Of a stretch of 64,000 bases of DNA, positions 17,056 to 26,876 are shown piece by piece. Position 1 is the first letter of the stretch. Every line of letters begins with the position of its first letter. Under the pieces are notes generated by a model. That model ran no database searches. It was not told the DNA's origin and worked only from the letters and a program-made list of their open reading frames with translations. The DNA lies in assembly GCA_002269645.1 (NCBI GenBank), contig NIVC01001103.1, forward strand, positions 248,001 to 312,000. The letters run 5' to 3'. The position numbers and the translations under genes were made by a program. This DNA comes from Macrostomum lignano (taxonomy: Eukaryota).

Positions 17056-20000
17056 ATGTCAGCTGACGATAAAAGCAACAAGCCGAGCGAGCTCAAGGAG
17101 GCCGAGGGCCTGCTGGAGCCAGAGGTGCAGGTTTTGCACCAGACCAGGGCGCAGAGGTTCTGCAAATTCGTCAAGGACAACCTGTTTATGACTAGCACCA
17201 TCGTCGGGGTGCTGCTGGGATTTATCCTCGGCGTGGCGATCCGAGCGGCCACCGATCCCGAGGACAGGACTGCGCGGTTCATGCTCTGGCTCAGTGAGTC
17301 CGGCCTGTGTTGCACTTTTGACAGCTAATTATTTGAGCTCTAGTTGGGCAAGGCAATGTCAGTTTCACGTAAGCCAGGGGTAGGGAAAATGTCAGATAAC
17401 AAGCGAATCAATGTCAGACAATGTCAGTTACCGGGTAAAGCAAGATGTCAGACAATGTCAGATACCAGGTAAAGCAAGATGTCAGACAATGTCAGATACC
17501 AGGTAAAGCAAGATGTCAGACAATGTCAGATACCAGTAAAGCAAGATGTCAGACAATGTCAGATACCAGGTAAAGCAAGATGTCAGACAATGTCAAATAA
17601 CATGGGTAAAGCAAGATGTCAGACAATGTCAGATACCATGGGTAAAGCAAGATGTCAGACAATGTCAGATACCAGTAAAGCAAGATGTCAGACAATGTCA
17701 GATACCATGGGTAAAGCAAGATGTCAGACAATGTCAGATACCAGTAAAGCAAGATGTCAGACAATGTCAGATACCATGGGTAAAGCAAGATGTCAGACGA
17801 TGTCAGATACCAGTAAAGCAAGATGTCAGACAATGTCAGATACCATGGGTAAAGCAAGATGTCAGACGATGTCAGATACCAGTAAAGCAAGATGTCAGAC
17901 AATGTCAGATACCATGGGTAAAGCAAGATGTCAGACGATGTCAGATACCAGTAAAGCAAGATGTCAGACAATGTCAGATACCATGGGTAAAGCAAGATGT
18001 CAGACAATGTCAGATACCAGTAAAGCAAGATGTCAGACAATGTCAGATACCAGGTAAAGCAAGATGTCAGACGATGTCGGTGCGAATTCGCTCTGATCAG
18101 ATGTCAGACAATAATTACCAAGCTATGTCAGATACAATCTAGGACAATGTCAGGCAAATATTGAATGCTTGAAATCGCACCCCGTTCCAGACATGCCCGG
18201 TGACTTGTTCATCCGATTGCTGAAGCTGACAATCCTGCCACTCATCGCGGCCAATGTAGTTGTCGGTGAGCTCTCCTTGATTAAACGACTTTGAGTCTAA
18301 ACTTTAGCCATTGTAAAACTTTAATTGAATAATTGCCAACATCCATGCTGCAGTGTCGGCCAATTTGGATCCCAAAGTGAACGGCAAGATTAGCCTGGTG
18401 TCGTTTGGCTACATCATTGTGGCCAACGTGGGCTCCGCTCTGATTGGTTGCGTGACCGCCCTGCTTATTCAGCCAGGTGAGACCATGATTATCAGCGGTG
18501 CCAAGACCGTATTCTTTGAGGCCCAATCTCTCTTACTTATGATGGTTCGGCCATAGACATCAGCACAAAGAAGGATGCCAGCAGCAAACTCCTGTCATAG
18601 AAATCATGCTTAAGCATTGACTTTCATGTCACAGATTCAATGCACCCCAGCCAGATGGGCCACTCCAGAGTCCAGCCGCTTGGCCACAGCGCGAAAACCC
18701 CAGGCTTCAGATATCTATCTATCCATCTATCTATCTATCTATCTATCTATCTATCTATCTATCCATCTATCTATCTATCTATCTATCTATCTATCTATCT
18801 ATCTATCTATCTATCTATCTATCTATCTATCTATCTATCTATCTATCTATCTATCTATCTATCTATCTATCTATCTATCTATCTATCTATCTATCTATCT
18901 ATCTATCTATCCCAAGCACTTTGAAGAGAAATTCGACCCTTAGAATATTTCACAAATTTTAAGTACTGCATGAATGCCTTTGATACCAACTGACCGTCTT
19001 TTCCACTTAGGCTTCATTTGTTATTCCGCACTGTGGAATTTACCTAACCCTAGCCATAAGGGTTTTTGAGATTCCGTTTTAAAAATTGCAGCCGTTTCCA
19101 TCAAGCGATCCGTGTTTTACATGCAGCCAGAATTGCCTTTCCAAACGCAATTAGCAAAACTTGTCACAACACGCACCTGGGCATCTGAATTTAAACCCGT
19201 AAAATTTCTTCAATATCCATCAGCTTCTTAGCACCTTTCCAAGCTTCAACATGCGAATGTCACCGGTTTTCGCTGCAAAATACCATTGCCATTGAAAGTT
19301 TTTGACGTTGTGAAATTTCGGTCTAGTTCTGAAATGTGGAATTTAGTTCTGAAATGGGGAATTTAGTTCTGAAATGGGGAATTTAGTTCTGAAATGGGGA
19401 ATTTAGTTCTGAAATGGGGAATTTAGTTCTGAAATGGGGAATTTAGTTCTGAAATGGGGAATTTAGTTCTGAAATGGGGAATTTAGTTCTGAAATGGGGA
19501 ATTTAGTTCTGAAATGGGGAATTTAGTTCTGAAATGGGGAATTTAGTTCTGAAATGGGGAATTTAGTTCTGCAATGGGGAATTTAGTTCTGAAATGGGGA
19601 ATTTAGTTCTGAAATGGGGAATTTAGTTCTGAAAAACTGAAAACTTCTTATCTCGCTAATGCATTTTGCAGCAAAATTTGCACAGATTAATATATATGCA
19701 GTCTGCGTGGCTGTAAGCTGCGGCTCTTCTTTCGTGAGAAGCAGAACTGCGGGGCTCCTGCACTGGGTCGTGTGTTTACAATTTTTACACACAGTTCAAT
19801 GTCCAAATGGCAAGCGAACTAAGTAGCGTGGACTTTTTCCAGGCAACAGCGGGGGTCACGAGGGGTCAGGGAGAAGCCAGTTATGCTATCAAGCTGGTTT
19901 CCGGTCCGGCATGGCTTTAAGGTTCAAGACTGCAGTTTTAAAGAACTGAAGACATTTTTTTCGAATGCGCAGGCCGATCGTGAATGATAATTATGCCCTT

Positions 20001-26000: not shown

Positions 26001-26876
26001 TGCCTGAGGCGCTAAAATGAGTGCCTGCCGCGCTAGAATGAATGCCTGCCGCGCTAGAATGAGTGCCTGCGGCGCAAAAATGAGTGCCTGAGGCGCTAAA
26101 ATGAGTGCCTGTGGCGCTAAAATGAGTGCCTGTGGCGCTAAAATGAGTGCCTGTGGCGCAAAAATGAGTGCCTGGGGCGCTAAAATGAGTGCCTGTGGCG
26201 CTAAAATGAGTGCCTGTGGCGCTAAAATGAGTGCCTGAGGCGCTAAAATGAGTGCCTGTGGCGCTAAAATGAGTGCCTGTGGCGCTAAAATGAGTGCCTG
26301 ATGCGCTAAAATGAGTGCCTATGGCGCTAAAATGAGTGCCTGTGGCGCTAAAATGAGTGCCTGAGGCGCTAAAATGAGTGCCTGAGGCGCTAAAAGGGAT
26401 GCCTGAGACGCTAAAATGAGTGCCTGAGGCGCTAAAATGAGTGCCTGTGGCGCTAAAATAAGTGCCTGTGGCGCTAAAATGAGCGCTGACAACACTATTC
26501 TCAAAATAATGGAAATGTAGGAATTTAGCCATGTACATGTTGAATTCTTAGCTTTGTCCCCCCCCCACCATAAAATCCATGGCGAGGTCCCTGAACACAA
26601 GTAACTTGGTGTTTCATTAGTATTACCCGCGCTCAATTCAACAACAGCGACCGGATGCGATCGGGCTCCATCGGCCTGTCGCACCTGTACTGCGCCGCCT
26701 TCACTCACTTTTTGTGCGCCGACGATCTCAAACGCCAGCCGGCGCAGGAAATCGAGCAGGGCGGCGACGGCTCCGGCGCCAACGGACAGTCGACCTCGTC
26801 GCCGCCAGCGAAGGCCGCCAATGACGTCATGATGGTGGAAATTGAATCGGAAAAGCCCGGTAAAGCGGCCGCTTGA
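17056..26876 (+). CDS. divergent SLC1 (EAAT/ASCT/GltPh family) transporter, 535 aa
   Basis: Exons 17056-17293, 18191-18265, 18354-18476, 23879-24263, 24369-24599, 25278-25604, 26648-26876 (1608 nt, all phases compatible, TGA 26874-26876). Motifs PGDLFIRLLKLTILPLI, DLLFNIFPDNL, VNMIGVIF, VDWLLDRMR. Confidence 0.93.
17400..18070. repeat. 33/36-bp minisatellite forming a 69-bp dimer, SLC1 intron 1
   Basis: GTAAAGCAAGATGTCAGACAATGTCAGATACCA(TGG) alternation. Confidence 0.95.
18712..18911. repeat. (TATC)n microsatellite, SLC1 intron 3
   Basis: About 50 near-perfect copies. Confidence 0.98.
19324..19633. repeat. 20-bp minisatellite (AATTTAGTTCTGAAATGGGG)n
   Basis: About 15 near-identical copies. 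Confidence 0.97.
20131..23865. repeat. 21-bp minisatellite (CTCCTATCTAACAGTAGAACA)n with ~1.1-1.3-kb higher-order duplications
   Basis: Variant unit AAAAGAAGACCCCAATCT recurs at ~20551, ~21844 and ~22957. Confidence 0.97.
24660..25082. repeat. 41-bp minisatellite, SLC1 intron 5
   Basis: CAGCAGGGTGAACTTGGGAGCTCAGAGCTGCTGCCCAATCA, about 10 copies. Confidence 0.95.
25676..26593. mobile_element. hAT-like MITE in SLC1 intron 6 carrying a 21-bp minisatellite (25819-26483)
   Basis: Imperfect TIRs CAGGCGCATCGCCA / rc CAGGGACCTCGCCA (11/14). 8-bp TSD AATACAAG / AACACAAG (7/8). Internal (GGCGCTAAAATGAGTGCCTGW)n. Confidence 0.75.

Follow-up and report, generated by a model that had tools for sequence, protein, structure and literature searches.

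The window analysed here, a 64-kb stretch of the Macrostomum lignano genome (contig NIVC01001103.1, assembly GCA_002269645.1), contains on its + strand a gene of the SLC1 (glutamate transporter) family. The gene extends from 17056 to 26876 in seven exons, and all its introns begin with GT and end with AG. Splicing gives an open reading frame (ORF) of 1608 nt that encodes an uninterrupted protein of 535 residues plus stop, as claimed in the original prediction for this DNA. The product is 100% identical to NCBI PAA72232.1 (BOX15_Mlig028619g1), and the annotated gene Mlig028619g1 spans the same 9821 bp (record positions 265056–274876). The protein is a member of the SLC1/DAACS family by profile and fold, and it does not have the defining features of the EAATs, the ASCTs or the bacterial H+-coupled members. 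We suggest that it is a trimer-type, elevator-fold membrane protein from a divergent subfamily confined to invertebrates and devoid of Asp405, the Na1/K1 ligand in GltPh numbering. An interpretation to which we give an even chance is that it is a working but non-canonical carrier for an anionic solute, a facilitator or exchanger in which a Lys383–Asp385 pair would serve as a built-in cation.

Fold and remodelled sites

The Pfam profile SDF (PF00375) matches residues 46–465 with E = 4.6e-72 and 243.6 bits, against a cut-off of 27.9. The best sequence match in the PDB is human EAAT2 (E = 2.5e-70), and the solved relatives EAAT2, EAAT1, EAAT3 and ASCT2, all human, give E-values from 1e-70 to 1e-55, followed by GltPh and GltTk at about 1e-21. 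An AlphaFold2 model built on an alignment of 82 sequences has a mean predicted local distance difference test score (pLDDT) of 84.4 and a predicted template-modelling score (pTM) of 0.84, with both the scaffold and the transport domain modelled confidently. It reveals a GltPh-type fold with hairpin 1 (HP1) at residues 335–365, hairpin 2 (HP2) at 408–443 and a break in transmembrane helix 7 (TM7) exactly at residues 383–384. Foldseek matches the model to the inward-facing structures of EAAT3, ASCT2 and EAAT2, with TM-scores, normalised to the target, of 0.89–0.93 and root-mean-square deviations of 2.3–3.2 Å. The sequons in the loop between TM3 and TM4 agree with a protein of the secretory pathway or plasma membrane that has the usual orientation.

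The altered motifs on which the original prediction was built are found at residues 124–129 (YIIVAN), 348–356 (TTAPVVAIP), 380–387 (AAIKGDGS), 424–432 (ALPNIPSAS) and 461–472 (DRMRSGSIGLSH), and the codons of KGDG occupy exactly the nucleotides that it had assigned to them. GltPh numbering was transferred through a MAFFT L-INS-i alignment of about 90 homologues, in which the reference is identical to PDB 1xfh. This alignment reproduces all the quoted motifs and every replacement that had been listed from a hand alignment (N310K, M311G, N401I, D405H, T92A, S93N and S277–279 to A-P-V), and it agrees that D312, D394 and R397 are retained (Table 1). The positions of G306 and T308 are changed as well, and R395 of TM8 is kept as R462. 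Judged by its aligned residues, the YIIVAN segment of TM3 is the remodelled wall of the Na3 site.

Two of the motifs span exon junctions, since the codon of P351 is divided between exons 5 and 6 and that of D461 begins one base into exon 7. The exon 5/6 and 6/7 junctions are backed by a homeolog of the gene (g2), by an intron-free contig (L002) and by gap-free alignment to cestode proteins. L002 is a 1337-bp Logan contig from SRR28338165 that runs continuously through the exon 4/5, 5/6 and 6/7 junctions, carries the same motifs and encodes a homologue with 69% identity to the window protein. Stop codons lie upstream of the position in L002 that matches the exon 4 acceptor, and the contig represents either a transcript in which splicing is incomplete or a gene with few introns in a related species. 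It supports the splice junctions but falls short of proving expression. For expression of this exact locus the support is only indirect and comes from the existing annotation and from the intron-free L002, which belongs to another sample.

The features that define the known SLC1 classes are only partly present. The NMDG motif of the unwound TM7 segment is replaced by KGDG at residues 383–386. Arg397 and Asp394, by which EAATs bind acidic amino acids, are present as R464 and D461, but the EAAT proton and K+ residues Glu318 (E373 in EAAC1), Tyr317 and Asp405 (K1 site) are replaced by I391, F390 and H472. The ASCT combination of Thr or Cys at 397 with intact NMDG and D405 is not found either, since R464 is present and both NMDG and D405 are absent. 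What is found is the set of residues that marks the divergent subfamily: Ile or Val at 89, F317, a non-acidic residue at 405, x-P-x-[IV]-P-S in HP2, and D394 and R397 kept, together with the placement in the clade described below.

Table 1 Exons, main repeat and aligned sites of the SLC1 gene (window coordinates; residues numbered as in the 535-residue product)
Feature	Position	Strand	Content
Exon 1	17056-17293	+	Start codon, N-terminal tail, TM1, residues 1-79; GT donor at 17294
Exon 2	18191-18265	+	TM2, residues 80-104; AG/GT boundaries; kept in the homeolog (L001)
Exon 3	18354-18476	+	TM3 with YIIVAN; codons 18413-18427 = I125 / A128 / N129
Exon 4	23879-24263	+	Extracellular TM3-4 loop with N-X-S/T sequons N154, N212, N224; TM4
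Exon 5	24369-24599	+	TM5-6, HP1a; ends T349 A350 P351 (HP1 tip)
Exon 6	25278-25604	+	HP1b; TM7 with K383-G384-D385-G386 (25372-25383), F390, I391; HP2 A-L-P-N-I-P-S-A-S
Exon 6, HP2 residue P426	25501-25503	+	Codon position
Exon 7	26648-26876	+	TM8 with D461, R464, I468, H472 (26649-26684); C-terminal tail; stop TGA 26874-26876
Intron 3 minisatellite	20131-23855		21-bp unit, ~172 copies; bulk of gene length; non-coding
TM3 sites			GltPh Y89, T92, S93 = I125, A128, N129
HP1 tip sites			GltPh R276, S277, S278, S279 = T349, A350, P351, V352
TM7 sites			GltPh N310, M311, D312, G313 = K383, G384, D385, G386 (D312 kept)
TM7 sites			GltPh Y317, Q/E318 = F390, I391
HP2 tip sites			GltPh T352, A353, G354 = L425, P426, N427
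TM8 sites			GltPh D394, R397 = D461, R464 (both kept)
TM8 sites			GltPh T398, N401, D405 = S465, I468, H472

An invertebrate subfamily and its maintenance

The closest relatives of the window protein are about 35 cestode proteins with 42–48% identity, while canonical animal SLC1s reach only 27–32%. Sites were counted in a flatworm set of 30 cestode, monogenean and M. lignano sequences. K310, D312 and R397 are present in 30 of 30, D394 and F317 in 29 of 30 each, and position 93 is N or D in 28 of 28; HP2 reads A-x-P-[NH]-[IV]-P-S. Position 405 is occupied by His in 17 proteins, Thr in eight, Ile and Val in two each and Ser in one. Asn310 is found in 83 of 87 canonical animal SLC1s, and all the prokaryotic homologues that were examined keep it, whether they are coupled to Na+ or to H+. 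TM7, HP2, TM4c/5 and TM2 are among the best-conserved segments of the flatworm clade and the tails are the least conserved. The conservation of TM7 and HP2 fits a protein that would still handle a ligand. Since the changes are kept across a clade, chance is ruled out as an issue.

The subfamily extends beyond flatworms, as shown by searching 1.84 billion cluster representatives exhaustively with a profile, followed by motif typing and name look-ups. The hemichordates Saccoglossus, Ptychodera and Glandiceps have 14 paralogs, all with K-x-D-G and 12 with H405, the annelid Owenia has one protein (KKDG/H), and a nemertean member reads NKAG/T. Many mollusc members have NRDG/H or NADG/H, and others have lost the whole motif (GRAG/Q, SRIG/N, CRCG/N). 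In six bivalve proteins (P0123, P0128, P0129, P0132, P0143 and P0164; the named ones come from Solemya, Mizuhopecten and Pinctada) the N-M-D triad is gone, giving GRAG, SRIG, GRTG, MRLG, CRCG and GRCG, while Arg311 and D394/R397 are kept. By its residues, this loss would be more drastic still than the changes in flatworms. A second, profile-based word-index search added only a partial copy of the M. lignano gene and did not widen the list of taxa; trematode and planarian members were neither found nor excluded.

In a distance-based (neighbour-joining) tree of 147 sequences and 443 columns, the subfamily is monophyletic in 100% of 200 bootstraps and the flatworm K310 clade, with the window protein nested inside, is recovered in 98.5%. 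A basic residue at 310 or 311 occurs in 50 of 57 subfamily members against one of 87 canonical proteins, and an acidic residue at 405 in one of 57 against 80 of 87. All 58 sequences with K310 pair it with D312; among the 38 without K310, D312 is kept in 23 and lost in 15. Read as charges, these residues suggest a consistent pattern in which the negative charge at 405 vanishes and a positive charge arises beside D312. The loss of the HP1 serines and of N401 is specific to the flatworm branch. The rewiring that had been noticed in this gene is real. It characterises an invertebrate subfamily spread over several phyla and is not a peculiarity of one locus. A full-text literature search found no description of a K310/H405 SLC1 subfamily or of this gene identifier; the papers on bivalves and planarians that it brought up had no bearing on the motifs.

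Two further observations concern single cluster representatives. P0193 and P0197 are EAAT-like and otherwise canonical (NMDG, Y317, E318) but have a Lys in place of Asp405; this may represent a separate instance of a tethered cation, here at the Na1/K1 site. P0163 is a predicted protein of 4596 residues with an SLC1 domain at 3443–3899, probably an annotation artefact of gene fusion.

The gene exists in several copies. Homeolog g2 (NIVC01002495.1) has the same exon structure as the gene in the window (g1) and shares 531 of 535 residues with it. The two differ by nine synonymous and four non-synonymous changes, three of the four amino acid differences falling in the N-terminal tail, which gives a synonymous divergence (dS) of 0.022, a non-synonymous divergence (dN) of 0.0034 and a ratio (omega) of about 0.15. 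The comparison with L002, which is more distant and has a dS close to saturation, gives an omega of about 0.20. The partial copy mentioned above (P0167, BOX15_Mlig028619g9) is a third one, of 282 residues and 99% identity, on another M. lignano contig. M. lignano has undergone a partial genome duplication, and g1, g2 and g9 fit this history. A paralog group with 64% identity comprises Mlig022109 g1–g3 and Mlig031123g1, the latter on the same contig as g1.

The disrupted canonical motifs and the extremely repeat-rich surrounding DNA, with tandem repeats making up about 56% of the 64-kb window, could point to a young pseudogene or an artefact of the gene model. Against this, the ORF is uninterrupted, the splice sites are canonical, the same substitutions are kept across phyla, the public annotation has an identical gene model and the fold prediction is confident. 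Omega of 0.15–0.20 also lies well below the value near 1 that had been named as the sign of a young pseudogene, and, together with the conserved lineages, it bears out the idea that KGDG/H marks a clade under purifying selection. Pseudogene and mis-splicing were rejected on the intact spliced ORF, homeolog g2, the junctions in L002 and omega, and we regard either as extremely improbable. The gene is functional and selectively maintained, neither a pseudogene nor a one-off.

The repeats of the window reach into the gene. Every long intron has its own minisatellite: a 69-bp unit in intron 1 (9.7 copies), a 41-bp unit in intron 5 (10 copies), a 21-bp unit in intron 6 (33 copies) and, in intron 3, a 20-bp unit (15.6 copies) and the 21-bp unit of Table 1 (172 copies) with a TCTA microsatellite. 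The repeat-bearing introns measure 897, 5402 (intron 3), 678 and 1043 bp in g1 and 712, 3473, 465 and 603 bp in g2 (window 17294–26647; L001 10239–16825), and the two repeat-free introns, of 88 and 105 bp, are equal in both. Downstream, a 14-kb tandem array at 29002–43183 consists of about 925 copies of a 15/16-bp unit, TCGGAGATATGAAGTC, with a pronounced GC skew of +0.58. Long ORFs within tandem arrays (for example 36553–38244, 41656–43322 and 48470–50758) look like repeat artefacts and were dismissed. The + strand, which carries the SLC1 gene, also has two exons of a class C G-protein-coupled receptor some 9–12 kb further upstream, at 5247–5813 and 7177–7647 (Pfam 7tm_3, E = 4e-25 and 7e-13), which resemble a GABA-B or metabotropic-glutamate-type receptor.

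Ion coupling and substrate

The signature of Na+ coupling has been defined as [S/T]92-93, N310, [M/S]311, [D/E]312 and [D/E]405, and that of bacterial H+ coupling as a hydrophobic residue at 92 with L311 and N405 (Reddy et al. 2025, PMC12668577). With A92, N93, K310, G311, D312 and H405, the window protein matches the Na+ signature at D312 only. In rat EAAC1, D454 (GltPh D405) is the shared Na1/K1 site, and its mutation to Ala abolishes K+ binding and relocation, the N365A mutant shows no activity, and E373 serves as the proton/K2 residue (PMC7537348). N365 is mapped here to GltPh N310 through its neighbour M366, which that study equates with M311. At the positions of D454, N365 and E373 the window protein has His, Lys and Ile, and the canonical EAAT cycle of 3Na+/H+ in and K+ out is therefore excluded on sequence grounds. 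Transport by this protein is probably not powered by sodium in the usual way.

How this might work is suggested by the pairing of K310 with D312. Flatworms, hemichordates and the annelid have a Lys where Asn310 of NMDG is otherwise invariant. In the window protein the ε-ammonium group of this Lys, Lys383, would pair permanently with Asp385 (GltPh D312), helped by Asn129 at position 93. Acting as a tethered cation, the pair would occupy the Na3/Na1 cavity and pre-organise the unwound TM7 segment and HP2, a job normally done by Na+ binding. Substrate binding and the elevator movement would then be Na+-independent at those sites, with possible pH modulation through His472. The broader proposal, that the K-x-D-G proteins of flatworms, hemichordates and the annelid, with their non-acidic residue at 405, form an unrecognised ancient class of Na+-independent SLC1 carriers in which a tethered Lys–Asp pair replaces the Na3/Na1 ions, is put forward tentatively, and we hold it to be possible but doubtful.

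Several points weigh against a tethered cation in place of Na+. The co-variation of residues rests on few independent evolutionary events, so that the counts are phylogenetically non-independent, and His405 varies within the flatworm clade; since it is not universal there (17 of 30), it cannot be an obligatory cation surrogate. Sequence is uninformative about the Na2 site, whose ligands are backbone carbonyls, and some Na+ dependence could remain. M. lignano lives in a sea-water medium, where Na+ coupling would not be limiting. In addition, bacterial homologues became independent of Na+ by an allosteric route that left the site residues unchanged (Reddy et al. 2025, PMC12668577), which makes such residues an imperfect guide to coupling in the SLC1 family.

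A first alternative is a symporter that is still coupled to Na+ but whose Na+ sites are altered or reduced in number, such as Na2 and a new D385/N129 site; Lys383 would then be structural or contact the substrate. The invariant D312 and the N or D always found at position 93 in the flatworm clade could provide oxygen ligands near Na3, and besides the backbone nature of Na2 the I/V-P-S core of HP2 is conserved. Against such residual coupling, five of the six signature positions are unmatched and a cationic Lys beside D312 would repel Na+ from Na3. M311, the thioether ligand of Na2, is replaced by Gly, A353 of HP2 is replaced by Pro, and G306 and T308 are changed as well. Taken together, we find this alternative unlikely.

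Replacement of Na+ by protons, with His472 (405), possibly together with Lys383 and Asp385, as the protonation site, appears quite unlikely. It would agree with the finding that His occupies position 405 more often than any other residue does in the subfamily, being present in hemichordates and molluscs as well as in 17 of the 30 flatworm proteins, and with A92, which matches one of the three bacterial H+-signature residues. But G311 and H405 depart from the L311 and N405 of that signature, the EAAT proton acceptor Glu at 318 is Ile, and 405 is Thr, Val, Ile or Ser in 13 of 30 flatworm proteins that are otherwise conserved, which argues that His is not essential to the mechanism of the clade.

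A derivative that has given up transport and acts as an anion channel or ligand sensor, keeping the fold and the binding pair, has a low probability in our view. EAATs have an intrinsic anion conductance, and the wide variation of the mollusc NMDG motif (GRAG, SRIG, CRCG, MRLG) suggests a relaxed constraint on the transport site in parts of the subfamily. In flatworms, however, TM7, HP2 and D394/R397 are among the most conserved parts, as expected of a site that handles substrate, and both the scaffold and transport domains are modelled confidently. The repeated paralog expansion in the gutless cestodes (about 35 sequences) also fits nutrient carriers better.

The substrate is probably anionic and amino-acid-like or dicarboxylate-like. 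Such a solute is expected because D461 (D394), R464 (R397), R462 and the HP2 motif A-x-P-N/H-I/V-P-S are conserved. It may differ from Glu or Asp, because the contacts of the α-carboxylate, HP1 Ser278 and Asn401, are replaced in the flatworm branch. The conserved Asp/Arg pair for acidic substrates that headed the original prediction is thus confirmed as a pair, but with N401 and the HP1 serines lost the designation "acidic substrate" is weaker than was claimed.

The Asn of NMDG and the Asp of TM8 are among the most conserved residues of glutamate transporters and central to ion coupling. A natural, maintained lineage with N310K and loss of D405, comprising some 30 flatworm members and expanded in hemichordates, offers a ready-made experiment on elevator transport without coupling ions, on a tethered amine in place of Na+ and on back-mutations that restore coupling. 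If the proposal is correct, evolution would have arrived at ion uncoupling in the glutamate transporter fold a second time, by a route distinct from the allosteric one of bacteria. The lineage is also relevant to parasites. All tapeworm SLC1 relatives recovered here belong to the Lys310 branch, and most of them are automatically annotated as "excitatory amino acid transporter 2/3" or "neutral amino acid transporter A". These EAAT2/3 and ASCT1 names are misleading, as they imply a mechanism that the residues of these proteins cannot support; other database labels of the subfamily are generic. Na+-independent amino acid uptake across the tapeworm tegument belongs to classical physiology, although our literature search did not confirm it, and the expanded cestode members would, if the proposal holds, be candidates for such uptake. 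More speculatively, they would be candidate carriers for the release of glutamate and aspartate by Taenia larvae, which is continuous, delivers glutamate into the brain tissue of the host and occurs by an unknown mechanism (PMC12227199).

Relation to known transporters

The animal EAATs (SLC1A1-3, 6 and 7), which carry glutamate and aspartate in a Na+/H+-coupled manner with countertransport of K+, share the Pfam family and fold of the window protein, and EAAT2, EAAT3 and EAAT1 are its best matches in sequence and structure. Common to both are the long, eukaryote-type TM3-4 loop with N-glycosylation sequons, the residues D394, R395 and R397 and the HP1/HP2/TM7 architecture. The window protein differs in KGDG for NMDG, His for D405, Ile for N401 and Ala/Asn for T92/T93, in Phe/Ile for the K+/H+ residues Y317/E318, in APV for the HP1 serines and in L-P-N for A-A-G at the HP2 tip. 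It also belongs to a separate clade (100% bootstrap), with 27–32% identity to canonical animal SLC1s.

Like ASCT1 and ASCT2 (SLC1A4/5), which are Na+-dependent obligate exchangers of neutral amino acids, the window protein has no Glu proton acceptor, and an exchanger mode is plausible for it. The residues that have changed are reversed, however: ASCT-type representatives (P0147, P0160, P0217) keep NMDG and D405 and have Thr or Cys for R397, whereas the window protein keeps R397 and has lost N310 and D405. The bacterial H+-coupled or Na+-independent homologues, of the GltP/GltT type and the ancestral intermediate of Reddy et al. 2025, are a precedent for the loss of Na+ coupling within the same fold, and like the window protein they have a non-hydroxyl residue at 92 and no acid at 405. 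Unlike it, the H+-coupled proteins (P0066–P0099) keep N310 and use L311 and N405, and none has Lys310. According to Reddy et al. 2025, bacterial uncoupling is allosteric and leaves the site residues untouched, whereas the sites of the window protein are rewritten.

No documented case of a tethered-cation substitution in SLC1 was found in the searched literature. Such substitutions occur in other transporters, as Lys158 of ApcT at the Na2 position of LeuT and as Arg262 of CaiT. The likeness proposed here is that of a Na+-independent homologue with a basic side chain where a coupling Na+ would otherwise sit; ApcT and CaiT are rocking bundles of the LeuT type and SLC1 proteins are elevators. By analogy, the window protein would work most like the Na+-independent homologues of this and other transporter families.

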